Shown in pieces: positions 1 to 61,277 of a stretch of DNA of 64,000 nt. The translations under genes were made by a program, and so were the position numbers. Source of the DNA: Azolla caroliniana. Its lineage: Eukaryota; Plantae; Polypodiophyta. Every line of letters begins with the position of its first letter. Within the stretch, counting starts at the first letter, position 1. The notes beneath the pieces are model-generated. The model was not told the DNA's origin. It did not search any database and saw only the letters and a program-made list of their open reading frames with translations. The stretch is taken from assembly GCA_043228905.1 (NCBI GenBank), contig JBHGNT010000058.1:98067-162066 (forward strand). The letters are read 5' to 3'.

Positions 1-78
1 CGTTGATGCTTGCGCAATATATAAATTATATTTATTACTAATCAATGATTGCAATATTAAAAAGTACAGAAGATATGA

Positions 79-151
79 TCCATTGTAGTCTAGTTGGTTA
101 GGATACTCGGCTTTCATCTAAGAGACCCGTGTTCAAGTCCCGGCAATGGAA
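79..151 (+). pseudogene. tRNA-Glu-like copy, TTC anticodon variant (representative)
   Basis: 73 nt, acceptor stem TCCATTG/CAATGGA, A box TAGTCTAGTTGG, T loop GTTCAAGTC. The anticodon stem and T stem are damaged. Confidence 0.85.
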
Positions 152-3100: not shown

Positions 3101-6100
3101 GGTTTCAAATGAAATTGGACAAAATATTATGTTGTTCGGGACAACAAGAAGAAGAAAATATTATGTGGTTACTCCTCAACATTATTACGATAAATTAGTA
3201 CACCAACAATTATAGTTTAGATAACTTGATTCAATTTCAAACAATATGCATAGATTGCAGAATAATGTTCAACTGTCGACAAGCATGATACCATTTTTCT
3301 TTATTTGTAGCATAGCACTAGAATAGTACATTCACTAACTCATTTACTAAATGAATTCCATTGTAATCAAGTTGCCTCGAATCGTTAATTTTTACCCGAG
3401 ACGCGTGGGTACAAGTACATGCATAGGAAAAACTAGACACATCATAGCTCATGAGTTAGTTTGGCATCGATAAAAACCGATGAACTTATTAAATCTTAAA
3501 ATCGAGAGTGTGTTAGAATAATCCTCAGTTGCTCGTTGATGCTTGCGCAATATATAAATATTATTTATTACTAATCTAAATAATGTACAATTAACAAAAT
3601 AATCATTATTATGTTTGAAGGATTGATGACAAACTTTGCTTTCATTTTTTTCTCCTAACATCAGTTTCTCCTAAACTTAATCCCATTATTTAATTGCACC
3701 AAACATTATGTTTTTCGGGAAAACAAGAAGCAGTACATCCAGTTGTGGTTATTCCTAAACATTGTTACAATAAATTAGTAAACCAACAAGTATAATTTTG
3801 ATAATTTGATACAATTTCAAAAAATACTCATAGATTGCAAAATACTGGTCAACTGCCGACAAGCATTGCACCATGTTTCTTTATTTGTAGCAATGCACTA
3901 GAATAGTACATTAACTAATTCATTTACTCAATGAATTCCATTCTAATCAAGTTGCCTCGACTCATTCATTTTCACCCGAGATGCGCGGGTACATGCACAA
4001 GCATAGGAAAAACTAGATACATCATAGATCATTAGTTAATTTGGCATCGATAAAAACCCGTAAAATTATTAAATCTTAAAAACCAGAGTGTGGTAGAATA
4101 ATCCTCTGTTTCTTGTTGATGCTTCCGCAATATATAAATATTATTTATTACTAATCAATGATTACAATATAAAAAAGTGCACAAGATGTGATCCATTGTA
4201 GTCTAGTTGGTTAGAATGCTTGGCTCTCACACGAGAGACCCAGGTTCAACTCCTGGGAATAGATTGCACCAACAATTATAGTTTGGATAACTTGATACAA
4301 TTTCAAACAATACACGTAGATTGCAAAATAATGGTCAACTGTAGTAAAGCACTCGAATATTACATTAACTAATTCATTTATTAAATGAACTCCACTATAG
4401 TCTAGTTCGTTCATATACTTGTTTTTTACAGGAGACTCCCGGGTACAACAATTGGCATGGGAAAAACTAAATACATCATAGATCATGAGTTTACACAAGA
4501 CTCTCGGGTACAACATTATGTTGTTCGGGAAAACAAGAAGCGGTAGATTTGGTTGCGGTTATTCTTGAACATTGTTATGACAAATTAGTACAGCAACAAT
4601 TATACTTTGGATCACTTGATACAATTTCAAACAATACGCGTAGATTGTAGAATAATGGTCAATTGTCGATGACTATTGCACTATGTTTCTTTATTTGTAA
4701 CAAAGGACTACAGTGGTACATTAACTAATTCATTAACAAAGGACTAGAATGGTACATTGTAATCAAGTTGCCCCGGCTACAAGTAGATATATCATATATC
4801 ATGAGTTAATGTGGCATCGATAAAAACCGTTGCAATTGTTAAATCCTAAAAACGATACTGTGTTAGAATAATCCTCAGTTTTTCATTGATGCTTGCACAA
4901 TATATAAATATTATTTATTTCTAATCAATTATTGCAATATTAAAGAGCATACAAGCTGTGATACATTGTACTCTAGTTGGTTAGGATGCTCGGCTCTCAC
5001 TCGAGAGACCCGTGTTGAACTCCCGGCAATGGAAAAGACAATATCATATATCAAATTTTGCGACACATGTCATGTGTGTACTGTTTGATAACTCAAAAAG
5101 TCAACCCCTAAAGTAGTTCTTAAAATAATGTACAATTAACAAAATAATTAATATTATGTTTGAAGGATTGACAAAGAAGTTTACTTTAATTTTTTTCTCC
5201 TAACATCAATTTCTAAACTTAATCCCATTATTCGATTAATGGTAGAGGTTTCGAATGAAATTGGACCAAACATTATGTTGTTCGGGAAAACAAGAAGCAA
5301 TATATTCAGTTGTGGTTATTCCTCAACATTGTTACGATAAATCAGTACACCAACAATTATAGTTTTGATAACTTGATACAATTTCAAAAAATACACATAG
5401 ATTGCAAAATACTGGTCAATTGTCGACAAGCATTGCAGTATGTTTCTTTATTTGTAGCAAAGCACTAGAATAGTACATTAACTAATTCATTTACTCCATG
5501 AATTCCATTCTAATCAAGTTGCCTCGACTCGTTCATTTTTGCCCGAGATGCGCGGGTACAACCACATGCATAGGACAAACTAGATACATCATAGATCATG
5601 AGTTAATTTGTCATCGATAAAAACCCGTCAAATTATTAAATCTTAAAAACGAGAGTGTGTCAGAATAATTTTCTGTTTCTTGTCGATGCTTGCGCAAAAT
5701 ATGAATATTCTTTATTACTAATCAATGATTGCAATATTAAAAAGTGCACAAGATGTGATCCATTCTAGTCTAGTTGGTTAGAATGCTTGGCTCTCACATG
5801 ACAGACCCGGGTTCAACTCCTAGGAATAGATTGCACCAACAATTATAGCTTGGATAACTTGATACAATTTCAAACAATACGCATTGATAGCAGAATAATG
5901 GTCAACTGTAGTAAAGCACTCGAATATTACATTAACTAATTGATTTACTAAATGAATTCCACTATAGTCTAGTTGGTTCAGATACTTGTTTTTTACACGA
6001 GACTCCCGGGTACAACAATTGGCATGGGAAAAACTAAATACATCATAGATCATGAGTTAATATATCATCGATAAAAACCCTTGAAATTATTAAATCTTAA

Positions 6101-15100: not shown

Positions 15101-15639
15101 TCATATATTACATTTCCGACGCATATCATGTGTTATCTGTTTGATAACTGAATAACTCAAGACCTAAAGTATCTGAGTTAATATCGCATCGATGGAAACC
15201 GTTGAAATTATTAAATCTTAAAAACGAGAGTGTGTTAGAATAATCCTCTGTTTCTCGTTGATGCCTGTGCAATATATAAATATTATTTATTACTAATCAG
15301 TGATTGCAATATTGAAAAGTACACAAGATATGATCCATTGTAGTCTAGTTGGTTAGGATACTAGGCTCTCACATGAGATAGCCGGGTTCAACTCCCAACA
15401 ATGGAAACGACAATATCATATATTAAATTTTTGACTCATATGATGTTTTAATTGTTTGATAACTCAAAAACGCAAGATTATGTTTGAAGGATTGATGACG
15501 ATCTTTCCTCCATCAACATTCCAAAAATACGCATAGCTTGTCGAATAATGATTAATTCTCGATTAGCATTGCACCATGTTTGTTTATTTGAATGAAAGCA
15601 CTTGAATATTACATTAACCAATTCATTTACTAGTTGAAT

Positions 15640-15712
15640 TCCATTGTAGTCTAGTTCGTTCAGATCCTTGTTTTTTACACAAGACTCCCGGGTACAACAA
15701 TAGGCATTGGAA
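15640..15712 (+). pseudogene. Degenerate second tRNA-Glu copy of the monomer (representative)
   Basis: Aligns without gaps over 73 nt to the near-intact copy 255 bp downstream. B box lost (GGTACAACAA); T6 run in the anticodon arm. Confidence 0.85.
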
Positions 15713-15894
15713 AAACTAGATACATCATAGATGATGAGGGAATGTCGCATCGATAAAAACCGTTGAAATTATTAAATCTTAAAAATGAGAGTGTGTTAGA
15801 ATAATCCTCAGTTTCTCGTTGATGCTTGCGCAATATATAAATATTATTTATTACTAATCTATGATTGCAATATTAAAAACTACACAAGATATGA

Positions 15895-15967
15895 TCCATT
15901 GTAGTCTAGTTGGTTAGGATACTCGGCTCTCACCCGAGAGACCCGGTTTCGACTCTCGGCAATGGAA
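15895..15967 (+). tRNA. tRNA-Glu(CTC)-like copy, probably a pseudogene (representative of ~65)
   Basis: Acceptor TCCATTG/CAATGGA, anticodon arm CTCGG-CTCTCAC-CCGAG intact. Three differences from the array consensus in the T arm, including G53>T. Confidence 0.75.
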
Positions 15968-18900
15968 ACGACAATATCATATATTGAATTTCCGACGGAT
16001 ATCATGTCTTAACTGTTTGATAACTCAAAAACTCAAGACCTAAACTAGCTGTTACAATAATATACAATTAACAAAATAATCAATATTATGTTTGAAGGAT
16101 TGAGGACGATCTTTAGTTTGATTTTTTTCTCCTAACATCAATTTCTAAACTTACTCCCATGATTCGATTAATGGTAGAGCTTTCAAATGAAATTGGACAA
16201 AACATTATGTTGTTGGAGACAACAAGAAGAAGTATATTTGGTTATGGTTATTCGTCAACATTGGTACGACAAATTAGTACACTAACAATTACAGTTGGCA
16301 TAACTCGATACAATTTCAAACAATACGCATAGAATAAAAAATAATGTTCAACTGTCGACAAGTATTGCACCATGTTTTTTTATTTGTAGCAAAGCACTAG
16401 AATAGTACATTGACTAATTTATTTTCTAAATGAATTACATTGTAATCAAATTGCCTCGAATCGTTAATTTCTACTCGAAACGTGCGGGGACAAGTATAGC
16501 CAACTATATCATGAGTTAATGTGGCATCGATAAAAACCCGTGAAATTAATAAATCTTAAAAACGAGAGTGTGTTAAAATAATCCTATGTTTCTTGTTGAT
16601 GCTTGTGCAATATATAAATATTATTTACTACTAATGAATGATTGCAATATTAAAAAGTGTACAAAATGTGATCCATTAATGTCTAGTTGGTTAGAATACT
16701 CGGCTCTCACCCAACAGACCCGTGTTCAACTCTTGGGAATAGAAAGGACGATAACTTATATACAAGTTTGCGACGATTGTCATGTGTTTGATAACTCAAA
16801 AACTGAAGACGTAAAGTATTTACAATAATGTACAATTAACAAAATAATCAATATTATGTTTGAAGTATTTATAAAGAACTTGGGTTTGATTTTTTTCTCC
16901 TCACATCAATTTCTAAACTTCATCCCAATATTCAATTAATAGTAGAGGTTTTTGATGAAATTTTACAAAACATTATGTTGTTCGTGACAAAAAGAAGCAG
17001 TATATTTACTTGGGGCTATTCCTCAACATCGTTACGACAAATTAGTACACCAAGCATTATAATTTCGATAACTTGATACAATTTCCAAAAATACGCATCC
17101 ATTGTCAAATAATGGTGTATTCTCGATGAGCAATGCACCATGTTTCTTTATTTGAAGCAAAGAACTAGAATATTACATTAACAAATTCATTTACTAAATG
17201 AATTCCATTGTAGTCTAGTTGGTTCACATCCTTGTTTTTTACACGAGACTCCGGGGTAGAACAATTGGCATGGGAAAACTAGATACATCATAGATCATGA
17301 GTTAATATAACATCGATAAAAACCCTTGAAATTATTAAATCTTAAAAACGAGAGTGTGTTAGAATAATCCTCAGTTTCTAGTTGATGCTTGCGCACTATA
17401 TAAATATTATTTATTACTAATCAATCATTGTAGTACACAAGATATGATCCATTGTAGTATAGTCGGTCGACGCAGATCTTGTGTTAACTATTTGATAACT
17501 CAAAAACTGAAGGCCTAAAGTAGATGTTATAATAATGTACAATTAACAAAATAATCAATATTATGTTTGAAGGATGGATGACGAGCTTTACTTTCATTTT
17601 TTCCTCCTAACATCAATTTCTAAACTTCATCCCATTATTCAATTAATAGTAGAGGTTTCAAATGAAATTTGACACAACATTATGTTGTTCGTGACAAGAA
17701 TAAGTAGTATATTTAGTCGTGGTTATTTTTCAACATGGTTACGACAAATTAGTACACAGACAATTATTGTTTGGATAACTGGATAGAATTTCAGTAAATA
17801 CGCATAGATTGTAGAAGAATGATGAACTCTCGATCAACATTGCACCATATTTTTTTATTTGAAACACAGCACTAGAATATTACATTAACTAATTCATTGA
17901 CTTATGAATTCCATTGTAGCCTGGTTGGCATTGGCAAAACTAAACACATCCTAGATCATGAGGTAATGTCGCATCGATAAAAACCCTTGAAATTATTAAA
18001 TCTTAAAAACGAGAGTGTGTTAGAATAATCCTTAGTTTCTCGTTGTTGCTTGCGCAATATATAAATATTATTTATTCCTAATCAATGATTGCAATATTAA
18101 AAAGTACACAAGATGTGATCCATTGTAGTCGAGTTGGTTAGGATACTCGGCCATCACCCAAGAGACCTGGGTCCAACCCCCGGCAATGAAAACGACGATA
18201 TCATATATTAATTTTCCGACTCATATCATGTGTTAACTGTTTGGTAGCCCAAGACCTAAAGTAGGTTTTACAAGAATCTACAATTAACAAAATAATTGAT
18301 ATTATGTTCGAAGGATTGATAATGAAATTTGCTTTGATTTTTGTCTCCTAACACCAATTTCTAAACTTAATCCCATTTTTGAATTAATAGTAGCGGTTTC
18401 AAATGAAATTCGACTAATCATTATGTTTTTCGTGATAGGAAGAATTAGTATATTTAGTTGTGGTTACTTCTCAACATTGTTACGAGAAATTAGTACACCA
18501 ATAATTATAGTATCGATAACTTGTTACAATTTCAAACAATACGCATAGATTGCAAAATAATGGTAAACTGTCGACAAGCATTGCACCATGTTTCTTTATT
18601 TGTAGGAAAGCACTAGAGTACTACATTAACTAATTCATTAACTCAATGAATTCCATTGTAATCAACCTACCTCAAATCATTGATTTTTACTCGAGATGTG
18701 CGGGTACAAGCACAGGCATATGAAAAACTAGATACATCATAGATTATGAATTATTTTGGCATTGATAAAAACTCGTGAAATTATTAAATCTTAAAAACCA
18801 GAGCGTGTTAGAATAATTCTTTGTTTTTCGTTGATGCTTGTGCAATATAGAAATAATATTTATTACTAATCAATGATTACAATACTAAAAAGTGCACAAG

Positions 18901-20835
18901 ATGTGATCCAATGTAGTGTAGCTGGTTAGGATACTCGGCTCTCACCCAAGAGACTCGGGTTTAATTCCCAGAAATGGAAATGACAATATCATATATTAAA
19001 CTTCCGACGCATATCATGTGTTAATTGTTTGATAACTTAGAAACTCAAGACCTAAACTAGGTGTTACAATAATGTACAATTAACAAAATAACGTTTGAAG
19101 GATTGATGATGAACTTTACTTTGATTTTTTTCTCCTAACATCAATTTGTAAACTTAATCCCATTATTCGATTAATTCTAGAGATTTCAAATGAAATTGGA
19201 CCAAACATTACGTTGTTCGGGACAACAAGAAGCAGTATATTTAGTTGTGGTTATTACTCAACATTGTTACGATAAATTAGTACACCAATAATTATAGGTT
19301 GGATAACTTGATACAATTTCGAACAATACATATACATTGCAAAATAATGGTCAACTGTCGAATAATGGTGAATTCTCGATGAGGATTGCACCATGTTTCT
19401 TTATTTGAAGTAAAGCACTAGAATATTATATTAGCTAATTCATTTACTAAATGAATTCCATTGTAGTCTAGTTGGTTCAGATCCATGATGTTTACACGAG
19501 ACTCCCGGGTACAGCAATTGGCATGGGAAAAACTAGATACAACATAGATCATGAGTTAATATTGCATCGATGGAAACCGTTGAAATTATTAAATATTAAA
19601 AACGAGAGTGTCTTAGAGTAATCCTGTGTTTCTCATTGATACTTACGGATTATATAAATATTATTTATTACTAATCAATGATTGCAATCTTGAAAAGTAC
19701 ACAAGGTATGATCCATTGTAGTCTAGTTGGTTAGGATACTAGGCTCTCACATGAGATAGCCGGGTTCAACTCCCAACAATGGAAACGACAATATCATATA
19801 TTAAATTTCCGACGCATATGATGTTTTAATTGTTTGATAACTCAAAAACTCAAGATTATGTTTGAAGGATTGATGACGATCTTTCCTCCATCAACATTCC
19901 AAAAATACGCATAGATTGTCGAATAATGGTGAATTCTCGATTAGAATTGCACCATGTTTCTTTATTTGAACGAAAGCACTTGAATATTACAATAACCAAT
20001 TCTTTTACTAAATGAATTCCATTGTAGTCTAGTTCGTTCAGATCCTTGTTTTTTACACAAGACTCCCGGGTACAACAATAGGCATTGGAAAAACTAGATA
20101 CATCATAGATGATGAGGTATTGTCGCATCGATAAAAACTGTTGAAATTATTAAATCTTAAAAACGAGAGTTTGTTAGAATAATCCTCAGTTTCTCGTTGA
20201 TGCTTGCGCAATATATAAATATTATTTATTACTAATCTATGATTGCAATATTAAAAACTACACAAGATATGATCCATTGTAGTCTAGTTGATTAGGATAC
20301 TCGGCTCTCACCCGAGAGACCTGGGCCGGGTTCAACTCCCGGCAATGGAAACGACAATATCATATATTGAATTTCCGATGGATATCATGTGTTAACTATT
20401 TGATAACTCAAAAAATAAAGACCTAAACTAGACAATTAACAAAATAATCAATATTATGTTTGAAGGATTGATGGCGAACTTTACTTTAATTTTTTTCTCC
20501 TAACATCAATTTCTAAACTTAATCCCATTATTCGATTAATGGTAGAGCTTTCAAATGAAATTGGACAAAACATTATGTTGTTCGAGACAACAAGAAGAAG
20601 TATATTTGGTTGTGGTTATTCGTCAACATTGGTACGACAAATTAGTACACCAACAATTACAGTTGGGATAACTCGATACAATTTCACACAATACGCATAG
20701 AATACAAAATAATGTTCAACTGTCGACAAGCATTGCACCATGTTTCTTTATTTGTAGCAAAGCACTAGAATAGTACATTAACTAATTCATTTACTCAATG
20801 TATTCCATTGTAATCAAGTTGCTTCGAATCGCTGA

Positions 20836-27752: not shown

Positions 27753-30632
27753 TGCGTATGTTTTAGTAGTACATGACAGTAGAATGAAATTGCACAGGTA
27801 ACATCAAACTGAAGAATAGAATATAACGTTAATCTAAATTGATAAAGTTTTATATTATATACCTGTGTCAGAAAACTAATCTAAAACCCATTGAAAATTT
27901 GAAACCATAAAATTTGAAAAAATAAAAAATCTTGGATTTTTAATTGGAATCCAATGCGATGCACTAGATTTCAGTTGAAAATCCAAGTTTTTTTTTTTTT
28001 GTAATTTTTAAAATTTTTTCCATTAAAAAATAAAAAATGGATTTTCAACTAAAATACTATGCACTACATTATATTTTAGTATATATAGCTAGAATCTAAT
28101 GCAATGCGTTGGATTAGAGTCGAAAATCCATTTTTCTTTTTTCTTTTTCCAATGTTATTTATTTATTTATTTTCCATATAAAATAATAATAAACGGCTTT
28201 TCAACTGAAATCCGATACACTACATCAGATCTTAGTCTATACAGCTAGACATTGATGCATTGCATCAGATTTTAGCTGGCAATCCTCTTTCTTTTCAATT
28301 GTTTTTTATTTTTTCAAAAAATAAATAAAAATATATTAGAAAAGTGGATTTGCAACTGAAATCTAATGCACTACATCGAATTTCAATTAAAAATCCAAAT
28401 TTCTTTTAGGTTTTTCATAAAACAATGAGATAATAAAAAAATATTACATTTTCAACAAAATCTGAACCATTGAGTCGGATTTCAATTGCAAATTAATGTT
28501 TTATGAAAAAACATAAGAAAAATATTGGACTTGCAATGGAAATCTGATGCACTGCATCGGATTTCTGTTGAAACTCAATGATTTTGAACGGAAATCCGAT
28601 GCAGTGCATCGGATTTCCATTGAAAATCCTGTTGAAAATGATGTGTTTTCAACGGGAATCCGATGCAGTGCATCGGATTCCCGTTGAAAACACATCATTT
28701 TAAATGGAGAAAATCACAATCTGTTTATTTTTAACACTTTTTTAGAGAAAAATATAAACAAATAAGAAAATTTGTAAACAAACAAGAAAACGTGGACTTT
28801 CAATGGAAATCCGATGCAGTGCATCGGATTCCCGTTGAAAATCCATCTTTTTCAATTCCTATATATTTATTTATGATAAAAACAAAAACAATTCAAAACA
28901 AATACAAAAAGAAAGTCAAAATATCTGAAAAATTGGAAACAAATAAGACAAAATGGATTTTCAATAGAAATCCGATGTAGTGCATCGGATTTCTCTAGAA
29001 AACCCATCTTTTGCAATTTTTATTTATTTACTTATGGGAAAAAATGAAAAAAAATTTAAAAAATACAAAACAATATTTTAAAATATGAAAATTTGGTAAC
29101 AAATAGCAAAAAATTGACTTTCAATACAAATCCGATGCAATAAATCGGATTTCCTTTGAAAATTCATTTTTTCAATTTTTATATAGTTATTTATGAGAAA
29201 ATAGACAAACAAAATACCAAAAAAATTCTAAAAACTATGAAAATTTGGAAATTTTCCATTGAAAATCAATTTTTTCAATATTTATTTATTTTTTATAGAA
29301 AAAATTCAAAAAAATTCAAAAAAAAAGCAAATTTGGGAAAAAATATGTAAAAGTGGACTTTCAACCAAAATCCGATGTAGTGCATCGGATTTCCGTTGAA
29401 AATCCATTTTTTCAATTTTTATTTATTTTTTTATGGGAAAAATAAAAACAAATTCAAAAAAAATTCAAAAAATAAGAAAATTTTCAAAAAAATAACAAAA
29501 ATTGGATTTTCAATTGAATCCGATGCACGGAATTGGATTTCCATTGAAATCTAAAATTTCAATTTTTATTTATTTATTTATGAGTAAAATAAAAAATGTT
29601 TATTTATTTATTTATGGGAAAATGTTTTATTTTTTCAATTTGTATTTATTTATGTATTTTCAGGAAATCCATGCAATGTATTATATTTTAGTCTATGTAG
29701 CTAGAATTCAATGCAATGCATTAAAATGCAAGAGTATTTTTTTAATGGAAATTTTTAAAAAAATTCCAAGACTTACAGGAATCTGATGCATTATATCCAA
29801 TTCTAGATGTATAGAGTAAAATTCGACATGTTGCGTCAAATCTAGATGGAATGAATCGGATTTCTGTACGACATCAAAGGCTTACTATGAGAATCTAAGA
29901 AAAATGGAAAACATCTTTAAGACATTTTTTAGATTCTAATGATTTTGGTAGAAAGCTTCTCTCACATAATCTAATCTTGTAAATGGAAAGTACATAATGA
30001 AATATCATAACGAAAAAGTGAGGAGGAAAGATGCATCAAGCACATCTACTCTTACATTGGATAATGTTTATATATTAGTTTATGACTTATCTTTGACCAA
30101 AACAAGTTATCTATGACAGACCACAATGAAGATACAAAAAGAGGATCTGGAATGTGGCTTCAGACACAACACAAAGACAAACAATAAGCATGACTCATAA
30201 ACTCGATGAGGTTGGATTGCAATTGGATCAACACAATGCATTAGTTTCCATTGATGATGAGGATGAGACCTCATAAACTCGTACTAGTTCATCTAATGGG
30301 TATGAAGATGATGACATAAACTTGAAAAATGATTGCCCTAATACGTTAACTATAAATATTGTATTGCACATCAAGATTTGGAATCAGAATTTCTATAAAT
30401 ATTGGGGTTAGTCATTTTGGACATTCATTTGTAAGTTTGGCATGTCCATTATTTAGGCATTGTTTTGAACACCTAAAATTCCGTACATGCTAAAAATCAA
30501 TATATTTTTGGGTCATTTTTAAAATTCCTTTACGCATGCGGCACACCTTTTTGTGAATCACCCTAATTTGTGTGATTTTTTTATGGACAGTTCTCAAAAT
30601 GCGACATATTACCTGTTTCAAATGTCCCGGTG
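27753..30632. mobile_element. AT-rich insert, probable non-autonomous or decayed DNA transposon fragment with one surviving end
   Basis: Non-satellite sequence with a sharp right junction (...AATGTCCCGGTG | TTTATTTG; reverse complement starts CACCGGG). No matching left TIR, no TSD and no transposase ORF. Confidence 0.5.
27934..29870. repeat. Array of ~45-50 bp palindromic units, consensus GGATTTTCAACGGAAATCCGATGCA(C/G)TGCATCGGATTTCCGTTGAAAATCC
   Basis: More than 15 variably decayed units in A/T-run spacers; perfect 67-bp palindrome at 28635-28701. Confidence 0.9.
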
Positions 30633-33600
30633 TTTATTTGTAGCAAAGCACTAAAATAGTACATTAACTAATTTATTTACTAAATGAATTCCATTGTAAT
30701 CCAGTTGTCTCGAATTGTAGATTTTTACTTGAAACGTGCGGGGACAAGTACAGGCATAGGAAAAACTAGATACATTATATATCATGAGTTAATGTGGCAT
30801 CGATAAAAGCCCGTGAAATTATTAAATCTTAAAAACGAGAGTTTGTTAGAATAATCCTCTGTTTCTTGTTGATGCTTGCGCAATATATAAATATTATTTA
30901 TTACTGATCAATGATTGCAATATTAAAAACTGTACAAGATGTAATCCATTGAAGTCTAGTTGGTCAGAATACTCGACTCTCACGCGAGATACCCGTGTTC
31001 AACTCTTTGCAATAGAAAGGACAATATCATATATAAAATTTTGCGACGAATGTCATGCGTTAACTGTTTGATAACTCAAAAACTTAAGACGTAAAGTAGT
31101 TACAATAATGTACAATTACCAAAATAATCATTATTATGTTGGAAGGATTGATAAAGAACTTTGCTTTGATTTTTTTCTCCGCACATCAATTTCTACACTT
31201 AATACGAATATTCAATTAATAGTAGAGGTTTCTAATGAGCTTTGACAAACGATTATGTGGTTTGGGACAAGGAGAAGAAGTATATTTAGTCGTGGTTATT
31301 CCTCAACATTGTTACGACAAAGTAGTACACCAAGAATTATAGTTTGGATAATTTGATACAATTTCCAAAAATGCGCATAGATTGTCGAATAATGGTGAAT
31401 TCTCGATGAGCATCGCACCATGTTTCTTGATTTGAAGTAAAGTACTAAAATATTATATTACCTAATTCATTTACTAAAAGAATTCCAGTGTAGTTTAGTT
31501 GGTTCGTATCTTTGTTTTTTACATGAGACTCCCGGGTACAACAATTGGCATTGGAAAAACTAGCTACATCATAGATCATGAGTTAATATCACATCAATAA
31601 AAACCATTGAAATTCTTAAATCCTAAAAACGAGAGTCTGTTAGAATAGTCCTCAGTTTCTCGGTGATGCTTGCGCAACATATAAATATTATTTATTACGA
31701 ATGGATGATTGCAATATTAAAAAGTACACAAGATATGATACATTATAGTCCAGTTGGTTAGGATACTCGGCTCTCACCCGAGAGACCCGGTTTCAACTCC
31801 CGGCAATGGAAACGAAAATATTGTATATTAAATTTCCGACGCATATGTTTTGTTAATTGTTTGATAACTCAAAAACTCAAGACCTAAAGTAGATGTTCCA
31901 ATAATGTACAATTAACAAGATAACCAATATTATGTGTGAAGGATTGATGACGAACTTTGCTTTGATATTTTTCTCCTAACATCAATTTCTAAACTTAATC
32001 CAATTATTCAATTAATAGTAGAGGTTTCAAATGAAATTTGACAAAAGATTATGTTGTTCGGGACCAGAAGAAGCAGTATATTTAGTCGTCGTTATTTCTC
32101 AACATGGTTACGACAAATTAGTACACCGACAATTATAGTTTGGATAACTCAATAGAATTTCAAACAATACGCATAGGTTGTAGAATAATGGTCAACTGTC
32201 GATGAGCATTGCACCAGGTTTCTTTATTTGTAATAGAGGACTAGAATATTATATTAACTAATTTATTTACTAAATGAATTCCATTGTAATCAAGTCGAGT
32301 ATAAATCGTTGATTTATACTCGAAATGTGCGGGTACAAGTACAAGCATAGGAAAAACTAGATACATTATATATCATGAGTTAATGTGGCATCGATAAAAA
32401 CCCCAGAAATTATTAAATCTTAAAAACGAGAGTATGTTAGAATAATCCTCTGTTTCTTGTTGATGCTTGCGCAATATATAAATATTATTTATTACTAATC
32501 AATGATTGCAATATTAAAAAGTGTACAAGATGTAATCCATTGAAGTCTAGTTGGTTAGAATACTCGGTTCCTTGCTGTTTACCTGAGACGCCCGGGTACA
32601 ACTAGATATATCAGATATACTGAGTTAATGTGGCATCGAGAAAAACCCTTGAAATTATTTAATCTTAAAAACGAGTGTGGTAGAATAGTCCTCTGTTTCT
32701 CGTTCATGCTTGCGTAAAATATAAATATTATTTATTTGTAATCAACGATTGCAATATTAAAAAGCACACAAAATGTGATCCATTGTAGTCTAGTTGGTTA
32801 GGATACTCGGCTCTCACCCGAGAGTTCCGGGTTCAACTACCGGCAATGGAAACGACAATGTCATATATTAAATTTCCGACACATATAATGCGTTATCTGT
32901 TTGATAACTCCAAAACTCAAGACCTAAAGTAAATGTTACAATAATGTGCAATTAACAAAATAATCAATATTATGTTTGAAGGATTGATGATGAACTTTAC
33001 TTTGATTGAAGGATCGATAGAAACCCATGAAATTATTAAATCTTAAAAACAAGATTGTGTTAGAATAATCCTGTGTTTCTTGTAGATGCTTGCACAATAT
33101 ATAATGTTTTTTTTTCTTCTTCTAACATCAATTTCTAAACTTAATCCCATTATTCGATTAATGGTAGAGGTTTCAACTGAAATTGGACAAAACATTATGT
33201 TGTTCAGGATAACAAGAAGTAGTATATTTGGTTCGTATCCTTGTTTTTTACACGAGACTCCCGGGTAAAACAATTGGCATTGGAAAAACTAGCTATATCA
33301 TAGATCATGAGTTAATATCACATCAATAAAAACCATTGAAATTCTTAAATCCTAAAAACGAGAGTCTGTTAGAATAGTCCTCAGTTTCTCGGAGACGCTT
33401 GCGCAACATATAAATATTATTTATTACGAATGAATGATTGCAATATTAAAAAGTACACAAGATATGATACATTACAGTCTAGTTGGTTAGGATACTCGGC
33501 TCTCACCCGAGAGACCTGGTTTCAACTCCCGGCAATGGAAACGAAAATATTATATATTAAATTTCCGACGCATATGTTTTGTTAACTGTTTGATAACTCA

Positions 33601-36717: not shown

Positions 36718-38010
36718 TGTCGTGTGAATCTTCACACACTATGTAAAAAAATAATGAAATAATTATTATAGATTAGATTAGTAGCTTACTATAGAAAGAT
36801 GGATATACTCAAGAGCTTCAAAATGTATTTTACTATATACAAAATGGAGAAATACATATCAAGTTATAAGAAAATAAAGTTTGAAAAGATAGGGAAATTA
36901 GAACTATCCCACATAGATAGAAAACTTAAGGCCTTGGCTATATAAGCACCTTGAGCTCCCTTTTTCATTTCTGCTAAGAGCACTTTGGCCACTTTGTCTT
37001 GATGGATGATGGTGGCCAAATTCCCTAAAATTGGAAATTGGTTGGTAAGCAAATCCGGAAAATGGGTCCGGTAAGCAAATCTAGAAACCGGCTAGTATGC
37101 AAACCGGAAACCGGCCGGTATGCAAAACCGGAACCGGAACCGGCAAGCAAAACCAGAACCGACCGGTAAGCAAAACCGGAACCGGAACCGGTATGCAAAC
37201 CGGAACCGGAAATCGACCGGCAAGCAAAACCGATATCGATCGGTAAGCAAAACCGGAACCGAAACCGGTATGCAAACCGGAACCGACCGGCAAGCAAACC
37301 GGAACTGTAACTGGAACCGGCCGGCAAGCAAAATGGAACCGGCCGGCAAGGGATTCAGCGATCGGGCGGAACTGGCAACCGTACGAGGTTGGGCGCAAAT
37401 TGAACGGATAAAAGGATCATGTGGCTATTTAAAGAAAGGTAAAAGAGACTAAAGTAAAGGTCAAGTGGACGGTTGCATGCAAGTAAAGAAAAAGCCATGC
37501 AACTAAAAATAGATTCAACGAAAAGAAAAGCTATGCAACTAAAAGTAGAAGCCATGCAACAAAAAGTGGAGGTATATGATCAACGAGGAAGTCCATATAT
37601 AATTCCATTTCTTTTCCTATACTCAGAAGCTCTCTCCATATTATCTCGATTATTTTTCTTTTCCTTCTCAACTCCCTTATCTTAGGGAAGCTATCTCTCA
37701 AGTAAACCATAATTTCCATACGGAAGCAATCTCTCAAAATCCAAAATTCCTTGTCAAAGCCATATCACTCAAGAATCATAATCTCTTATTTCCTCTAATC
37801 TATTATTCTAATCATCTCCATAAGATAAAACTTTTGTAATCCCAATCTTGAGATTGATTATAATCTTTCTTTCCATTTATTAATGAAATTTGTGAATCTT
37901 TATCATTTTGTATTAATTGTTTAATATAATCATACGAATCTGATATCTTCTGGTCGAAGGCCCCGGGGTCCTGCCTCAAGTTCGCGTATCCTCGTCGTAT
38001 TTTCGCGACA
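36718..38010 (+). mobile_element. Solo LTR, 1293 bp
   Basis: TGTCG...CGACA termini; 4-bp TSD ACGC at 36714-36717 and 38011-38014; satellite is continuous across it; no coding sequence. Strand inferred from the shared 5' motif CACACTATGT with the LTR at 60397. Confidence 0.88.
37050..37350. repeat. AACCGG-based minisatellite inside the solo LTR
   Basis: Repeated GCAAA(A)CCGGAACCGG(AACCGG) units; explains the low-complexity ORFs in the track. Confidence 0.9.
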
Positions 38011-48931: not shown

Positions 48932-50248
48932 TTAAAGACGACGAGTGGAACGAGTCGGCGCTAATTGTGGACCGGGTTTGTCCGGATACTTTCGGTGGAA
49001 ATCGGCAAGAAGATCTTGTGCATTGGCAACATGCTGGACGGGTTCCCAAGTATGTTCGCTCAGAGTATAACCGAACCAATCGACCAAGTAATAAAGTTTG
49101 CTGCGAACAAGTTTGGAATCGAGGATGGCAACAACTTCATACTTCGGGCCGGCGTCCAACTCCAGCAGGGGCGGCGGTGGTGTCACACGATCCGGAATGG
49201 TGTTTGCTTTATAAGGTTCAAGAAGAGAACAATGGAAAACCGGATGTATCTGAAGCTACAAAGGGAGATCAAGGCGGAAGGAGACATCATTAATCTTACC
49301 CGTAATACGGAAGGGACCGAGTCGTCGATAATCCAACTTGTCGCATGGTCGAGTAGTCTTGATGTGATGACGTAAGAGCCATACTCGATCTCCGATGGCA
49401 AAAGAGGAGGGAATTCGATGACGATCCGCATAAGTCTTTTGTGTGTGTTGAGCATGACGAAGGTGAGTAGAGAGATCCATCTGGATCTTGGGTAGCCTCT
49501 CCAAATGATCCTCGGCACGAGGGGTGGTAGGTAGCTCCGGAGTGTCGATCACCGACCAGCGAGGATGGAAACTGGTATAAGAGAAAAATGGGGAGACCTG
49601 AGTCGAGGAGTGAATAGCATTATTATACGCAAACTCCGCAAAGTGGAGAATCTCGGCCCAATCGTCCCGTTGATAACTCAGCGTTTGGTTTGTTCGTTCC
49701 GCCTGCCCGTCGGTCTGAGGATGGTTGCCGGAGGAGAGGTTGCAGGAGACCTTGAGCATCTTGAAGAGATGCTGCCAAAATTTGGAGACGAATTGCGGGC
49801 CTCGGTCACTGATAATACTGTCTGAGAGGCCATGATGCCGAAATACCTCACGCATAACAAGAGCGGCGGTTTCCTCGCTAGTGATGGCTTTAGTACACGG
49901 CACAAAATGTGCCATCTTCGTGTATCGATCGACGACGGTTAGGATAGCATCGAACCCCTTCGAAACCGGCCGATCTGTGATAAAATCAAGACAAATAGAC
50001 TGCCACGGCCTACTTGGAATCGGTAAGGGTTCCAACAAGCCATATGGATGGTGTCGTGGCATCTTTGCTCGGCAGCAAGCATCACAGGTATGAACGTAGT
50101 CATCAACAAAACGCCGCATGTGGGGCCACCAAAAAGATCGCTGCCCTAGCTCCATCGTCTTAGTACTACCGAAATGTCCCGCGTATGGGTGTCGTGACAA
50201 TGTTGGACGATTTGAAGGCGACAGGAGCAATCGGGGACATATACGCAC
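48932..50248 (-). pseudogene. Integrase (zinc-binding HHCC region, DDE core, GPF motif) plus chromodomain
   Basis: GHFG..KT, CDACCR, ICLDFIT, IISDRGPQF, PQTDGQAER, YEVVAILDSK..YYLVDWFGY..TWEP; interrupted by a stop. Confidence 0.93.
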
Positions 50249-50626
50249 TTTTTAAAGAATAACAAACCATCATGATATTCGAATTGTCAGTAGTCAATAC
50301 CTGGTTGTTGAGACCGAGAACAGGATGCCCGAGAAGTATCAATGTGCGCCAAGATGTCTTGAGCAAAACTATCCGTCTTCAAGGTTGCACGTATGTCATC
50401 GGTAATCCGTGAATCCATCGGGGTGTGAAAAATCCGCGTCGTGTGCAATCATGTTGGTCCCAAGATTACTTGCTTTTGATTATCAAATGTTGCGTCACAA
50501 GGACGAGGTGCAAGATAGTGCATCTGCTTTTCCTTGATGCTTCCCCGGTCGATATGTGATTTTGAAGTCGAAACGCGTGAGGAATTGCGCCCATCGAGCT
50601 TGCCGTCGATTTAGTACGCGAGCGTT

Positions 50627-51718
50627 CTAAAAATAAGCAAGATTTTTATGATCGCTAAAGACAATGACCTGATGTGGAGAGCCCTCTAAGAGATGCCGCC
50701 ATTGTACAAATGAATCCACGATGGCTAATAACTCCTTGTCATGTATTTCGTAGTTGATTTCTACGACATCGAATTTGCGCGAATGGAAAGCCACCGGATG
50801 CAACTCTTCTTTATCGCCTTGTTGAGAAAGGATGCTACCGAGGGCGAAATCTGATGTGTCGGCCTCCATGATGAATGGTTTGCTTGTATCCACATGAGCT
50901 AGAATCGGTGCTGATGTAAAGGCCATATCTGCTTCTATGGACCAAAGAAATGCTTGGCCCTTCTTCGTAAGTTGTGTGAGAGGTAAAATAATCTTCGAGT
51001 AATCCTGTATAAACTTACGGTAGAAGTTAGCAAAACCTAGAAAACATTGTACATCTCGTATCGACTGTGGAATTTGCCACTCTAGTACAGTTTGGATTTT
51101 AGCTGGATCCATGGTGATGCCCTTTGAGGAGATGACGTAGCCTAGAAATTCCACTTGCTTGCAGCCAAAGCTACATTTTTCTAGCTTGGCATAAAGACCA
51201 TTCTCACGGAGTCGCTTTCGTACTAATAGTACATGAGAATCGTGCTCTTCCTGGGACTTCGAATAAATCAATAGATCATCCAGATAAATGATCAAACAGA
51301 TATCCAAGAGGTCTCTGAATATATCATTTGCCATGTGTTGGAAGACTGCGGGTGCATTGGTTAGGCCAAACGGCATAACAGTATACTCGAAATGCCCATA
51401 CCACGTGCGAAAGGCGGTCTTCCACTCATCTCCCGGTCGGATCTGCACGAGGTTATACGCTCCTCATAGGTCGATTTTAGTAAAAAACTTGGCACCATTA
51501 ACTCGCTCTAAAAGACTTGATATAAGAGGAAGTGCATACCTATTCCGGATGGTGACTTTATTCAATCCGTGGTAATCAACGACAAGACGAAGTGAGCCAT
51601 CTTTCTTCTTGACAAAGAAGATGGGTGCACCGACCGGAGATTTCGAATGGCGGATGAACCCTTTTGCCAAGTTCTCCTCTATGTAGGCTCGAAGGACTTC
51701 TAACTCGGTGGGTGACAA
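50627..51718 (-). pseudogene. Reverse transcriptase plus RNase H
   Basis: [66 protein letters not shown]; stop codon at ~51464. Confidence 0.95.
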
Positions 51719-51923
51719 GTTGTAAATTGGTCCCCATGGTGGCTCGGTTCCTGGTTGTAAATCGATGGGACAGTCATAGGGATGGTGATGAGGAAGGGTA
51801 CCGGCTTTTACCTTGTCAAATATATCGGCATAAGGATGCTATTTTGCCGGAAGTTGTACTGAGGAGTCCTTCTTGGGGTGAAATGGTCGAAACTTGGTGA
51901 GTTGATTCTTGGGGTGGTCGATA

Positions 51924-52379
51924 TCAGACTTCTCTTGTTCTCCAATCTATGGCTGGATTATGTAATTCAAACCAAGGTAATCCTAGGACAATGGGATGCT
52001 CTGGACTACTAATTATATTAAATGATATTACACACACAAAACTACCTAGGACAACCTGAATGGGTTCTGATTCTTCTACAATATTCCCGGAAGCAATGGG
52101 ATGACCATCAATGACTACTACAGATGGAGGACAAGGAAGATTTCTTAAGGATATCTGAGAAGCTTGGGCAAAATTTCGATCCATGAAAAAGGAATTAGCT
52201 CTGGAATCTAAAAGTGCTAGGACGGGTACTGGGGGAGTACTTGTAGTACTAACAATGACTTGGGCTAGGAACACATTGCTAACTTGCTTGGAAGGAATGG
52301 AACCACTAATGGGCTGTACAGATCTAGGGTTGCTGTCCAACCAAACGGCTCCTATTTTGGCTGGACTCAATCGTTTAAC
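51924..52379 (-). pseudogene. Aspartic protease region (start of pol)
   Basis: ALLDSRANSFF (DSG motif mutated to DSR) and IVLGLPWFELHNPAIDW. Confidence 0.88.
52335..52379 (-). promoter_or_regulatory. Putative -1 ribosomal frameshift signal (gag to pol)
   Basis: G TTA AAC heptamer just before the gag stop; the -1 frame is the protease frame; 6-nt spacer then an 11-bp stem GTCCAGCCAAA/TTTGGTTGGAC. Confidence 0.75.
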
Positions 52380-53525
52380 TCTTCATCTAATTGACTAAGG
52401 ATTTCAAATTTATTTGAGATACTTGGGCTATTAGTACTATGAATACTATCAAACACTCTATTAGTACTATTAATACTATCAGACACTCCTGAGGGAAGAA
52501 TTGACTCAGGTTTAGTACAGGCTACAATTTGATTTACCTGTCTTCTTGGCTTATGGGGACAATTGATTGCGATATGCCCTGGTCCACCGTAATAAAGACA
52601 TAATCGATTTGCACATCGTCGTTGCTTTTCTTCTTTCGATAACGGGCCGCGTCGACGCATGGTATCGATCTCCATTGGTGTCGAAGTATTTGCTTGAGGT
52701 ATGTCTCGTGCAAACGGTCTAGCCGCGACTGCGGCATAAGTGGGCTCCAGCCTAGCGCGTGGTATCTGTAATTGACGTTCCGAACGCCGTTCGAAAAGGC
52801 GGTTGTCACATCGGACCACTCGACTGATTGCCTCCGTAATAGACTTTGGTTCTTCGGGGAAGGTTAGAAGTAGATCTTTGACATCATTTCGCAGACCATA
52901 GCGAAACTGCTCCATTAGTGCTTGATCATCCGCCGCGTAGGCGGAAAGCGAGTAGGCGGAAATCCGCCGCGTAGGCCGAGGCTGGACGATCGCCTTGACG
53001 CAATCGCCGGATCTTGTTGATCGTCGTCCTGATGTTGTCGGTGTCTCCAAAGCAGGCTTTGAACTCACTAATAAAATCTTCAAAGTTATTAAGCAAGGGC
53101 GATTGTTTTTCTAGAAGCGGAGTGAACCATGCTAAGGCTGAGCCACTAAGCAACGTGCCTATTAAGCCGACTCGGGATGCATCAGTGGGGTATCGGGAAA
53201 GATGCATTTGGAGGACTAATCGTACCTGATTAAGGAATCCCCTGAATTGCGATCGCGTTCCATCAAATTTCACAAGAACTCCAATCTTCGGCTCTTTATG
53301 AAATCCTTGGGGACTTGATCCTTGTTGTTGCAATGCCGCTTCGAGTTGTTGCACCCGTAACACTAACTCCCCATGTTGTTGCTGCGTTTGTTGCTTTTCT
53401 AGAGCGATTTGTTGCAGATCCCCTATCAGCAGTTGGTTTTCTTGTTCTAGGGCAACAAACTTTTCTTTTCGGCACTGTAACTCGGAGAAAACGGATTGAT
53501 ATTCTTGGGCGCTAACAGTAGCCAT
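52367..53525 (-). pseudogene. Gag (frameshifted)
   Basis: KFDGTRSQFRGFLNQ, LLSGSALAWF, LRQG, TPMEID and a decayed zinc knuckle CLYYGGPGHIAINC; ATG at 53525; split over two frames near 52930-52960. Confidence 0.9.
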
Positions 53526-53585
53526 AGTAGAGGGAAAAGGGTATGAGGATGAGGGAGAACGACAAGTAGGCTGGAGGAAAGAAAA

Positions 53586-53597
53586 AAATTGGTTCAA
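53586..53597 (-). promoter_or_regulatory. Putative self-priming primer-binding site
   Basis: TTGAACCAATTT, 2 nt after the 5' LTR, with no TGG. It is complementary to AAATTGGTTCAA at 53807-53796 on the same strand within the LTR. Confidence 0.75.
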
Positions 53598-53599
53598 AC

Positions 53600-54023
53600 T
53601 ATCAAGAATAGTACTAAAGCAGAGATGGAATTAGTACTAAGAAGAACAGTACTATTAGTACTAAGAGGACGGGACTGCGTAAGATTCCCGAGAAAGAGGA
53701 AGTGAGAAGAGGAGAGACAGAGATAGGATGATGACATCAGCTCTTATATTATATGAAAGATAAGTACAAATCGGCTAAGAGGCTTAAGACTGGTGTTGAA
53801 CCAATTTGGTTCAAAACAATGCCTTGTGCCTCCTTTTATAGTGTTTTTAGGAATAATCTTGAAGCTTCTAGAATGTTCCAGAGAGATCTGGAATATACAT
53901 CAATTTTCTATGATAAAGAATAAATAAAAATAATACCCTACAAATTACAATTCATAGTCTAATGGTAAGAGCTCGACCCATGTAGCATAAGGTCATGGGT
54001 TCGAGTATTGCCATATCATGACA
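53600..54023 (-). repeat. 5' LTR of the chromovirus (424 bp)
   Basis: Direct repeat of 46935-47342; TATAAAA at 53840-53834 on the minus strand; inner terminus mutated. Confidence 0.95.
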
Positions 54024-54267
54024 CTAGTTGGTTCAGATACTTGTTTTTTACACGAGACTCCCGGGTACAACAATTGGCATGGGAAAAACTAAATACATCA
54101 TAGATCATGAGTTAATATCTCATCGATAAAAACCCTTGAAATTATTAAATCTTAAAAACGAGAGTGTGTTGGAATAATCCTCAGTTTCTTGTTAATACTT
54201 GCACAATCTATAAATATTATTTATTACTAATCAATGATTGCAATATTAAAAAGTACACTACATATGA

Positions 54268-56971: not shown

Positions 56972-59900
56972 CGTTGATGCTTGCGCAATATATAAATTAT
57001 ATTTATTACTAATCAATGATTGGAATATTAAAAAGTACAGAAGATATGATCCATTGTAGTCTAGTTGGTTAGGATACTCGGATTTCACCTGAGAGACCTG
57101 TGTTCAAGTCCCGGCAATGGAAACGACAATATCATATATTAAATTTCTGACGCATATGATGTTTTAATTGTTTGATAACTCAAAAACTCAAGATTATGTT
57201 TGAAGGATTGATGATAAACTTTCCTCGATCAAGATTCCAAAAATACGCATTGATTGTCAAATAATGGTGAATTCTCGATTATCATTGCACCATGTTTGTT
57301 TATTTGAAAGAAAGCACTTGAATATTACATTAACCAATTCATTTACTAAATGAATTCCATTGTAGTCTAGTTCGTTCAGATCCTTGTTTTTTACACAAGA
57401 CTCCCGGGTACAACAATAGGCATTGGAAAAACTAGATACATTATAGATGATGAGGTAATGTCGCATCGATAAAAACCATTGAAATTATTAAATATTAAAA
57501 ACGAGAATGTGGTTACGACAAATTAGTACACTGACAATTATAGTTTGGATAACTTGATAGAATTGCCAAAAATATGCATAGATTGTAGAATAATGGTGAA
57601 CTCTCGATCCACATTGCACCATATTTCTTTATTTGAAGCAAAGCACTAGAATATTACATTAACTAATTCATTTACTAAATAAATTCCATTGTTGCCTAGT
57701 TGGTTCGGATCCTCATTTTTTTACGCATAGATTGCAGAATTATGGTCAACTATCGAGAGACCCAGGTTCAACTCCCACCAATAGAAAAGACAATATCATA
57801 TATCATATTTTGTGACGCATGTCGTGTGTTAAGTGTTCGATAACTGAAAAATTGAAGACATAAAGTAGTTGTTACAATAATGTACAATTAACAAAATAAT
57901 CAATATTATGTTTGAAGGATTGATAAAGAACTATAGTTTGATTTTTTTCTCCTAACATTAATTTCTAAACTTAATCCCATTATTCAATTAAAAGGAGAGG
58001 TGTCAAATGAAATTTGACATAACATTATGTATTTCGGGACAAGAAAAAGCAATATATTTAGGCGTGGTTATTCCTCAACATCGTTACGACAATTATAGTT
58101 TGGGTAGCTTGATACAATTTCCAAAAATACGCATAGATTGTAGATTTATAGTGAACTCTCAATGATCATTGCACCATGTTTCTTTATTTGAAGCAAGGCA
58201 CTAGAATATTACATTAACTAATTCATTTACTCAATGAATTCCATTGTAGTCTAGTTGGATCAGATCCTTGTATTTTACACGAGACTCCCGGGTACATCAA
58301 TAGGCATTGGGAAAACTATATACATCATAGATCATGATATATTGTGGCATTGATAAAAACCCTTAAAATTATTAAAGCTTAACAACGAGAGTGTGTTAGA
58401 ATAATCCTTTGTTTCTCATTGATGCTTGTGAAATATATAAATATTATCTATTATTACTCAATGACTGCAATATTAAAAAGTGCAAAAGATGTGATCCATC
58501 ATAGTCTAGTTGTTTAGGATACTCGGCTCTCACCCGAGAGACCTGGGTTCAACTTCCGGCAATGGAAACGACAATATCATATATTAAATTTCCCACGCAT
58601 ATCATGTGCTAACTATTGGATAATTTAGAAACTCAAGATCAAGATCTAAAGTAGTTGTGACAATAATGTACAATTAACAAAATAAACAATATTATGTCTG
58701 AAGGATTGATGAGTAACTTTACCTTGATTTTTTTCTCGTAACATCAATTTCTAAAGTTAATCCAATTATTCAATTAATGGTAGAGGTTTCAAATGAAATT
58801 GGACAAAACATTATGTTTTTGAGGATAACAAGAAGCAGTAGATTTAGGTGGGGTTACTACACCAACAATTATAGCTTGGATAACTCGATACAATATAAAA
58901 CAATACGCAGAATAATGGTCAACTGTCGACAAGCATTCCACATGTTTCTTTATTTGTAGCAAAGCACTAGAATAGTACATTAACTAATTCATTTGATAAA
59001 TGAATTCCATTGTAATCAAGTTGCCTCGGATGCTTGCTTTTTACCCGAGACGCACGACTATAAGTAGATATATCATATATTATGAGTTAATGTGGCATCG
59101 ATAAAAACCCTTGAAATTATTAAATCTTAAAACCGAGAGTGTGTTAGAATAATCCTCAGTTTTTCGTTGATGGTTGCGAAAAATATTTATATTATTTTTT
59201 TCTAATCAATGATTGCAATAATAGAAAGCAGAGAAGATGTAATCCATTGTAGTCTAGTTGGTTAGAATACTCCGCTCCTACCCAAGAGAACCGGGTTAAA
59301 CTCCCATCAATGGATACATCATAGCTCATGAGTTAATTTGGCATCGATAGAAATCCGTGAAATTATTAAATCTTAAAAACGAGACTGTGTTAGAATAATC
59401 CTGTGTTTCTCGTAGATGCTTGCACAATATATAAATATTATTTATTTTTTTCTTCTAACATGAATTTCTAAACTTAGTCCCATTATTCAATTAATGGTAC
59501 ACCTTTCAAATGAAATTTGAGAAAACATTATGTTGTTCGATATAACAAGAAGAAGTATATTTAGTTCTGGTTATTCCACAACTTTTTTACAACAAATTAT
59601 TTCTTTATTTCTAACAAAGGACTAAAAGTAAATATATCCTATATCATGAGTTAATATGGCATCGATAAAAACCCTTGAAATTATTAAATCTTAAAAACGA
59701 CAGTGTGTTAGAATAATCATTATTTTTTCGTTGATACCTGCGAAATATATAAATATTATTAATTTCTAATCAATGATAAAAAGATTAAAAAGCACACAAG
59801 ATCTGATCTACGATAGTCTAGTTGGTTAGGATACTCGGCCCTCACCTGAGAGACCCAGGTTCAACTCCCGGCAATGGAAACGATAATATCATATATTAAA

Positions 59901-60396
59901 TTTCTGATGCATATCAGGTGTTAACTCTTTGATAACTCAAAAACTGAAGTCCTAAAGTAGGTGTTACAATAATGTACAATTAACAAAATAATCAATTTTA
60001 TGTTTCAACGATTGATGACGAACTTTACTTTGATTTTCTTCTCCTAACATCAATTTCTAAACTTCATTCCATTATTCGATTAATGGTAGAGGTTTCAAAA
60101 GAAATTGGACAAAATATTATGTTGTTCGGGACAACAAGAAGAAGAAAATATTATGTGGTTACTCCTCAACATTATTACGATAAATTAGTACACCAACAAT
60201 TATAGTTTAGATAACTTGATTCAATTTCAAACAATATGCATAGATTGCAGAATAATTTTCAACTGTCGACAAGCATGATACCATTTTTCTTTATTTGTAG
60301 CATAGCACTAGAATAGTACATTCACTAACTCATTTACTAAATGAATTCCACTGTAATCAAGTTGCCTCGAATCGTTGATTTTTACCCGAGACGCGT
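56972..60396 (+). repeat. Higher-order duplicate of positions 1-3406
   Basis: Same order of monomer variants and deletion junctions; identical spurious ORFs at offset 56971 (1806 vs 58777). Confidence 0.95.
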
Positions 60397-61239
60397 TGTC
60401 GTAGTGTAGGTTGCACACTATGTGGAAATTATATTTTTGTCCCTCCGGATAGAGAATGGAGTGCTCGGTGAGAACCGGAAGAAAACGGCATACCGGCAAG
60501 GAGGAAAACGGCATACCGGCAAGGAGGAAAAACGGCATACCGGCAAGGAAGAAAACGGCATACCGGCAAGGAAGAGCCGGATAAAGAGACATAAATGTAA
60601 AAAAAAAGGAAATACTCACTACTGCGCAGGGCGTGAGTCGAACTCTGCACCTCCACGTTGACAAACCCCAACCTTACCATTACATTAAATTATCTTAAGT
60701 GTTTTAAATATAGATTTAATATGTATAAGACCTTTATTTATGCATACCTTTATTAAAAGGTAAATCGTGTATTTCTTTAATATATGAAAAAGAAAAAACA
60801 CGAGACACTAAAAATAACTCATGCACATCTAGCGTGCATGAGCCCTATACTTAGGAAATAAAAAAAAAGCATCACATGCACATTTAGTGGACATGAACAC
60901 TTTTTGTAAAAAAAAAAAAAAAAAAGCATGAAGCCATGCTTAGCTCTTCTTTCCTTATATAAGGAGGAGAGAAATATGTAAAGGGTTGATGATTATTTGG
61001 ATTAAGTATTAATCAATACAAAAATTATTCGTGGGATTCACGATTTATACATCTACTTCTCTCTTAACACCCTAAGTACCAATTAATATAGTATACTCGT
61101 GTGATTCACGAGTTTCTTATCTTTCTCTTTGCTATTTACTCATAATTAATCTCTATCTCACGAACTTCTTTCTCCTAGTCCAAGACCTCTGTGGTTCCCA
61201 CCCGACTCACGCAACGATCCGCAGCCGAAAGGCACGACA
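60397..61239 (+). repeat. 5' LTR (843 bp)
   Basis: TGTCGT...ACGACA inverted termini; TATATAA near 60955; PBS follows after 4 nt. Confidence 0.88.
60481..60573 (+). repeat. 23-bp tandem repeat x4 in U3 (GAAAACGGCATACCGGCAAGGAR)
   Basis: Directly visible. Confidence 0.92.
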
Positions 61240-61243
61240 CAGT

Positions 61244-61261
61244 TGGTGAACCCGACGTGAA
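61244..61261 (+). promoter_or_regulatory. Primer-binding site, tRNA-Trp
   Basis: TGGTGAACCCGACGTGAA is complementary to the 3' end TTCACGTCGGGTTCA-CCA of plant cytosolic tRNA-Trp (sequence recalled, not searched). Confidence 0.85.
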
Positions 61262-61277
61262 GACGGGTGGCAAGGAG

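Follow-up and report, generated by a model that had tools for sequence, protein, structure and literature searches.

What was the original unit of the tandem array that runs through this window, the 64,000-nucleotide stretch of Azolla caroliniana DNA analysed here, and how many tRNA genes did that unit once hold? A ~795-bp monomer is repeated in tandem on one strand from position 1 to ~60.4 kb of the window, which has an AT content of 66%, and the array is broken up by retroelements and other insertions. The first-pass annotation had read the monomer as the fossil of a tandem triplication, composed of a near-intact tRNA gene (here B), a degenerate copy (A) and a third copy reduced to a ghost. 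Its quoted strings and coordinates are all present in the sequence, the ghost start, end and flank strings lying at consensus positions 497-520, 575-593 and 698-735, respectively.

ARAGORN finds 33 tRNA genes in the window, all on the plus strand, comprising 31 tRNA-Glu genes and two with a mutated anticodon. Matches to the Rfam tRNA model above its gathering score number 46, all on the plus strand, all at the B position of the monomer and with scores of 29.5-58.1 bits; no A copy and no ghost copy in the window passes this covariance model. The monomer consensus, first built from 12 full-length copies and then refined with all copies (37-69 per position), places body A at 1-72, body B at 256-327 and the proposed ghost at ~516-595. 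In the monomer listed in Table 1 and the one that follows it, bodies start at 31484 (A), 31739 (B, +255), ~31999/32000 (ghost, +260), 32280 (A, +280) and 32536 (a hybrid body, +256), the three monomer segments being 255, 260 and 280 bp long.

Table 1. Features of one monomer and of the beginning of the next (positions in the window).
Feature	Position	Strand	Details
Motif copy M1	31386..31393	+	Local sequence CGAATAAT; consensus AGAATAAT; 98 nt 5' of the degenerate body
Unit A body, degenerate tRNA-Glu pseudogene	31484..31555	+	Own covariance model 81.6 bits; no Rfam or ARAGORN call
Unit A flank	31556..31738	+	Detectable homology with the B flank limited to its first ~20 nt and two short in-register islands
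Motif copy M2	31642..31649	+	Local sequence AGAATAGT; 97 nt 5' of the tRNA (B)
Unit B body, near-intact tRNA-Glu(CTC)	31739..31811	+	ARAGORN call; Rfam 45.6 bits; own model 89.9 bits
Motif copy M3	31898..31905	+	Local sequence CCAATAAT; consensus ACAATAAT; 102 nt 5' of the ghost
Proposed ghost third body	31999..32078	+	In the predicted register; likeness to A marginal, to B absent
Motif copy M1 of the next monomer	32182..32189	+	AGAATAAT; 98 nt 5' of the next degenerate body
Unit A body of the next monomer, further decayed	32280..32353	+	Own covariance model 48.5 bits
Recombinant B/A body	32536..32616	+	B-type 5' half and A-type 3' end, then A flank; own model 49.1 bits

The relationship between A and B is secure. 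The degenerate copy at 31484 is a real tRNA-Glu copy, as had been proposed: the two bodies align without gaps at 56 of 72 positions (78% identity, 16 differences), local alignment of the two thirds gives z=14 when scored against dinucleotide shuffles, and nhmmer reports an E value of ~1e-12. The nhmmer match extends ~20 nt beyond the 3' end of the body, which points to a duplication at the DNA level and not to a processed copy. Further out, the A and B flanks are near random overall, both by alignment and by whole-diagonal identity, apart from two islands in register (P about 0.015), of which one matches at 12/13 positions at an offset of exactly 255. The background-level identity of the flanks is what would be expected if retro-insertion or ectopic gene conversion had brought tRNA sequence A into an unrelated spacer, an origin that we consider scarcely credible, as the likeness also reaches ~10 nt upstream of the body in addition to the ~20 nt downstream, comes without CCA or A tail, and recurs in register in the two flank islands. 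A two-unit tandem origin of the monomer from A and B is certain. The proposal that the monomer is an old tandem multimer thus stands for two units, which share the body, the ~20 nt downstream and the two islands; a third unit is only plausible, based on the 255/260/280 spacing, the upstream motif and weak matches.

In the consensus, body B forms all 21 of 21 cloverleaf pairs and body A keeps 18 of 21. A retains the 5' half and the anticodon stem, which is fully paired thanks to a double change from G:C to T:A and to a wobble pair produced by a C-to-T change, and its anticodon loop reads TTTTTAC, with TTT as the anticodon. With two pairs gone from the T arm and a change at T55, its B box is damaged. 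The paired anticodon stem and canonical loop may mean that pseudogene A stayed under structural constraint for some time after the duplication. Anticodons also vary among the B copies: a subfamily with tRNA starts at 79, 6213, 6550, 44973, 45605, 48315, 54268, 54602 and 57050 has TTC instead of CTC, and the single copies at 7351 and 14203 are called SeC(TCA) and Arg(CCT), respectively, variants that indicate anticodon drift within the array.

The array is an ordinary higher-order tRNA-gene satellite, a known type of structure. Its repeats are head-to-tail and co-oriented with a tRNA gene in each, as in a tandem tRNA-gene cluster; the amplified unit holds at least two homologous, diverged sub-monomers (A and B), and copies of the whole block, which are 77-95% identical, are more alike than the flanks of A and B, which show background identity. 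In higher-order satellite repeats of the alpha-satellite type, diverged sub-monomers are amplified together as one block, and there, as here, the block copies resemble each other (80-90%) more than the sub-monomers do. In contrast to alpha-satellite, the sub-monomer here is a Pol III gene unit and not a centromeric monomer, and outside the tRNA body little more than random similarity is left between the sub-monomers. Tandem tRNA-gene clusters described in plants include the Ser-Tyr-Tyr and Pro clusters on Arabidopsis chromosome 1 and 0.4-kb Cys repeats (PMC7544208, PMC12308677, PMC10701932, PMC13437025), and clustered plant tRNA genes have been reported to be methylated and mostly silent (PMC7544208, PMC12308677, PMC13437025). 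Like the Arabidopsis clusters, the tRNA-Glu array consists of head-to-tail, same-strand repeats of a tRNA-gene unit, and the Arabidopsis Ser-Tyr-Tyr unit also has an internal duplicate (Tyr1/Tyr2). Unlike them, it is far more decayed (~10% from consensus) and split by retroelements, only one of its two or three sub-units is still a tRNA, and a run of T follows only ~155 nt downstream. No description of such a tRNA-Glu satellite was found in our literature searches.

Does the remaining third of the monomer descend from the same unit? A low-threshold search with a tRNA covariance model, which the first-pass annotation had put forward as a check, does not recover the ghost: at E<=10 over 28-36 kb the Rfam model returns B copies only, and a dedicated model trained on 18 B and 14 A bodies, applied to the whole window with filters off, picks up ~125 bodies of types A and B but none of the ~50 ghost copies in register. 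When nhmmer profiles of each third are compared with the other two, only the A-B match is significant, with E values of 0.04 or worse for A or B against the third segment. In local, semiglobal, transition-tolerant and composition-aware log-odds alignments of the third segment, z does not exceed ~2 with A and is negative with B. When the bodies are compared with it by plain local alignment, P is 0.17 for A and 0.53 for B, and the best B match lies out of register, at consensus 590-610. None of the ghost subfamily copies in the array looks more tRNA-like.

These negative results are what would be expected if the monomer were a dimer followed by unrelated spacer. The 280-285 bp after B would then be original intergenic DNA and the ghost a chance likeness in 70% AT sequence, an account that we think unlikely though it deserves serious weight. 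Consistent with it, the generic, HMM and covariance-model tests of the third segment are all negative, the segment has no similarity to intact tRNA, and an equally good tRNA-like match lies out of register at the 590-610 position just mentioned.

Position-specific comparisons are more favourable to a third body, and the likeness that they reveal is to A. Against the intact tRNA of B the ghost has no match (P=0.13-0.5); against A, P lies anywhere between 0.003 and 0.3, according to the extent of the scanning correction. In a position-fixed global alignment, the ghost with 25 nt upstream matches A at a level attained in 5 of 2000 controls, while alignment of the body only gives 63/3000 against A and 394/3000 against B. 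An unbiased scan of all monomer windows against A plus its upstream 25 nt returns as top non-self window exactly the ghost; when only the body is scanned, five other windows match A equally well, and against B the ghost window comes 16th. The 3' 18-mer of the ghost is at an edit distance of 3 from A (P<1/3000 in a fixed window), and when all k-mers and positions are scanned the ghost-to-A match has P=0.02-0.3. Several of these test windows were chosen after matches picked by eye in the first-pass annotation, and the small ghost P values are therefore partly post hoc. On such comparisons, the putative ghost tRNA cannot be told from chance similarity in AT-rich DNA and lacks likeness to the intact tRNA.

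The best-supported periodic signal is a three-fold motif. A[GC]AATAAT, which had been noted upstream of all three bodies, occurs exactly three times in the consensus, 98, 97 and 102 nt upstream of the A, B and ghost bodies and nowhere else, with spacings of 255/284/256. The 13-nt context of M3 is identical to that of M2 at 12 of 13 positions, at an offset of 255. A three-way in-register 9-mer with at most one variable column is found in 5 of 600 shuffles, and a three-way in-register 8-mer in 20 of 300. In a circular self-comparison of the consensus, with tRNA bodies excluded and hits defined as ungapped matches of 13/17 or better, five of the ten hits fall at offsets of 250-290 (binomial P about 2e-3; 0/300 shuffles); a Poisson estimate that counts the three interdependent motif hits as two gives ~0.006, and in-register hits that involve the third segment alone have P about 0.1. 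Whole-diagonal identity shows no peak at offsets of 250-290, the A-B flanks included, and the columns identical in all three segments of a three-way MAFFT alignment give z=1.7. The matches of the third segment are collinear, with the upstream/start region, the 3' end and the motif at offsets of 280, 271 and 256. An off-diagonal signal at 255-280 bp is present, most of it carried by the A-B pair and the motif, and the refutation envisaged in the first-pass annotation (no such signal above shuffled AT-rich controls, especially for the ghost third) therefore neither takes hold nor is clearly avoided. The claim of a ghost third copy exceeds chance marginally, the motif and register signal speaking for it and the Rfam, covariance-model, nhmmer and plain alignment results against it.

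Among present-day copies, the least variable stretches include consensus 128-145, 500-517, 766-783 and 149-166, which take in ~18 nt just 5' of the ghost and of body A as well as the AGAATAAT motif; their low variability may simply reflect AT-rich, CpG-free sequence. That A[GC]AATAAT would be a selected, positioned cis-element, involved for example in chromatin phasing or in binding of a Pol III-related factor, seems to us very improbable. If it were selected, the array unit would be kept in three-fold phase and would not merely be decaying.

As proof of a third body the motif does not suffice by itself, since unequal exchange between two short direct repeats also gives three motifs with two bodies. 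This is how the dimer with unrelated spacer would account for it, R-S-R becoming R-S-R-S-R, a footprint of unequal exchange that we likewise hold to be possible, if doubtful. The P of about 0.1 for hits of the third segment alone agrees with such an origin. This account nevertheless calls for several coincidences together: a spacer within 12% of the unit in length, a best match to A that happens to sit at the predicted body position, a 12/13 direct repeat already in place at a 255-bp spacing, and off-diagonal hits that cluster at offsets of 250-290 all the same.

Alternatively, and in our view improbably, old deletions, partial duplications and hybrids could have turned the third segment into a mosaic of scrambled unit fragments. 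Today's array is full of rearrangements, with local periods of 120, 163, 243, 315-339 and 488 bp and many jumps in monomer coordinate, and the A-like 3' end at consensus 575-593 is directly followed by the weak, D-arm-like piece at 590-610. Neither of these two pieces is significant alone, and the collinearity of the in-register matches is not what a mosaic would be expected to leave.

Taken overall, the explanation that we prefer, with rather more confidence for it than against it, makes the array a higher-order repeat derived from an old tandem cluster of tRNA-Glu genes. As to the number of units, the near-equal segment lengths, the motif spacing, the predicted position of the best A match and the collinear matches favour a third unit, and the complete lack of likeness to intact tRNA and the post hoc choice of some windows count against it; on these sequence comparisons, a third and far more decayed unit is probably present in the monomer, by a modest degree.

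For A and B the sequence shows the following history: a ~255-bp tRNA-Glu unit was duplicated in tandem at the DNA level, flanks included. A lost its T arm and B box and acquired a TTT anticodon, with B staying a perfect cloverleaf, and the whole ~795-bp block was subsequently amplified head to tail, reaching about 60-69 copies per position in the window. Exchange goes on and yields B/A hybrid bodies and multi-monomer block duplications, and after amplification all parts, B included, have drifted at one rate, with CpG sites changing about twice as fast. The remaining 280-285 bp would represent a third unit that is much older or decayed faster. If this unit is real, a duplicate of an already decayed A-type unit is more likely than a single triplication, because in the T-arm and acceptor region, as in the 25 nt upstream, the states that the ghost appears to share are those of A, with none of B's, an argument from derived states that is partly circular, the ghost having been found through its likeness to A. 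The three stages of decay fit the data as fixed before amplification, because the A-type and ghost states are common to all copies. That selection preserved only one copy, as had been suggested, is an inference, to which gene conversion may be an alternative.

Since amplification, B has been decaying at the pace of the spacers. At non-CpG sites the copies differ from the consensus by 0.093 in the B tRNA, by 0.093-0.119 in flanks and spacers and by 0.104 in the ghost; divergence at CpG sites is 0.12-0.26, and these sites change 1.5-2.5 times faster than others. Among the array copies, non-CpG divergence thus reveals no purifying selection on the B tRNA body relative to its flanks, which means that B is under no detectable purifying selection now. 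Uniform drift together with the CpG excess suggests that the array is a methylated, silent satellite. A Pol III terminator shortly 3' of B is absent from the consensus, in which the first run of at least four T stands ~155 nt downstream (482-488).

Exchange between units can be followed directly. The hybrid at 32536-32616, which creates a local 243-bp period (TRF, 32355-32810), directly documents unequal exchange between the two body types, and jumps in monomer coordinate are many across the array. Blocks of several monomers have also been duplicated: 1-3400 and 56972-60390 are 97.7% identical and 15174-16435 and 19552-20800 are 93.5% identical, values far above the 77-90% typical between monomers, which indicates recent segmental duplications atop an old array.

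For the fern Azolla, more than 7,500 tRNA genes and more than 10,000 tRNA-like sequences have been reported. If the trimer is true, the array would show a working tRNA gene cluster turning into a satellite, in which sub-units die singly, the multimer becomes the unit of amplification and everything then drifts, and it would go some way towards explaining why so many tRNA genes and tRNA-like pseudogenes are reported for some plant genomes, such as that of Azolla. It also counsels caution in annotation, as many "tRNA genes" in such genomes would be neutral satellite copies. The tRNA-Glu array adds detail to a known process and no new mechanism.

Several other elements lie within or next to the array. 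An insertion at 28000-29600 is full of ~150-160-bp tandem units with a perfect hairpin in each; these units score below threshold with the models of several miRNA families (for mir-580, 48.8 bits where the gathering score is 83), and the insertion looks like a MITE-like repeat. A degenerate AACCGG-rich minisatellite at 37044-37339 (periods 6, 12, 23, 48 and 77) and a 23-bp tandem repeat of 4.3 copies at 60477-60575 each mark the edge of an insertion in the array. The array is interrupted or ended by a Ty3/gypsy-type element on the minus strand (48936-54024) with reverse transcriptase (RT), RNase H, integrase and a Tf2-1-like SH3 domain, and by a 708-aa open reading frame on the plus strand (61191-63317) with a weak DUF4100 match.

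A search of metagenome contigs with a DNA pattern, run to obtain an outgroup array, gave a single match, contig L001, which was rejected for this purpose because it carries the same satellite, 89-97% identical to the consensus. This 2-kb contig of the public metagenome assembly ERZ1034427 contains the tRNA-Glu satellite at 1-1087, which indicates that host plant DNA was present in that sample.
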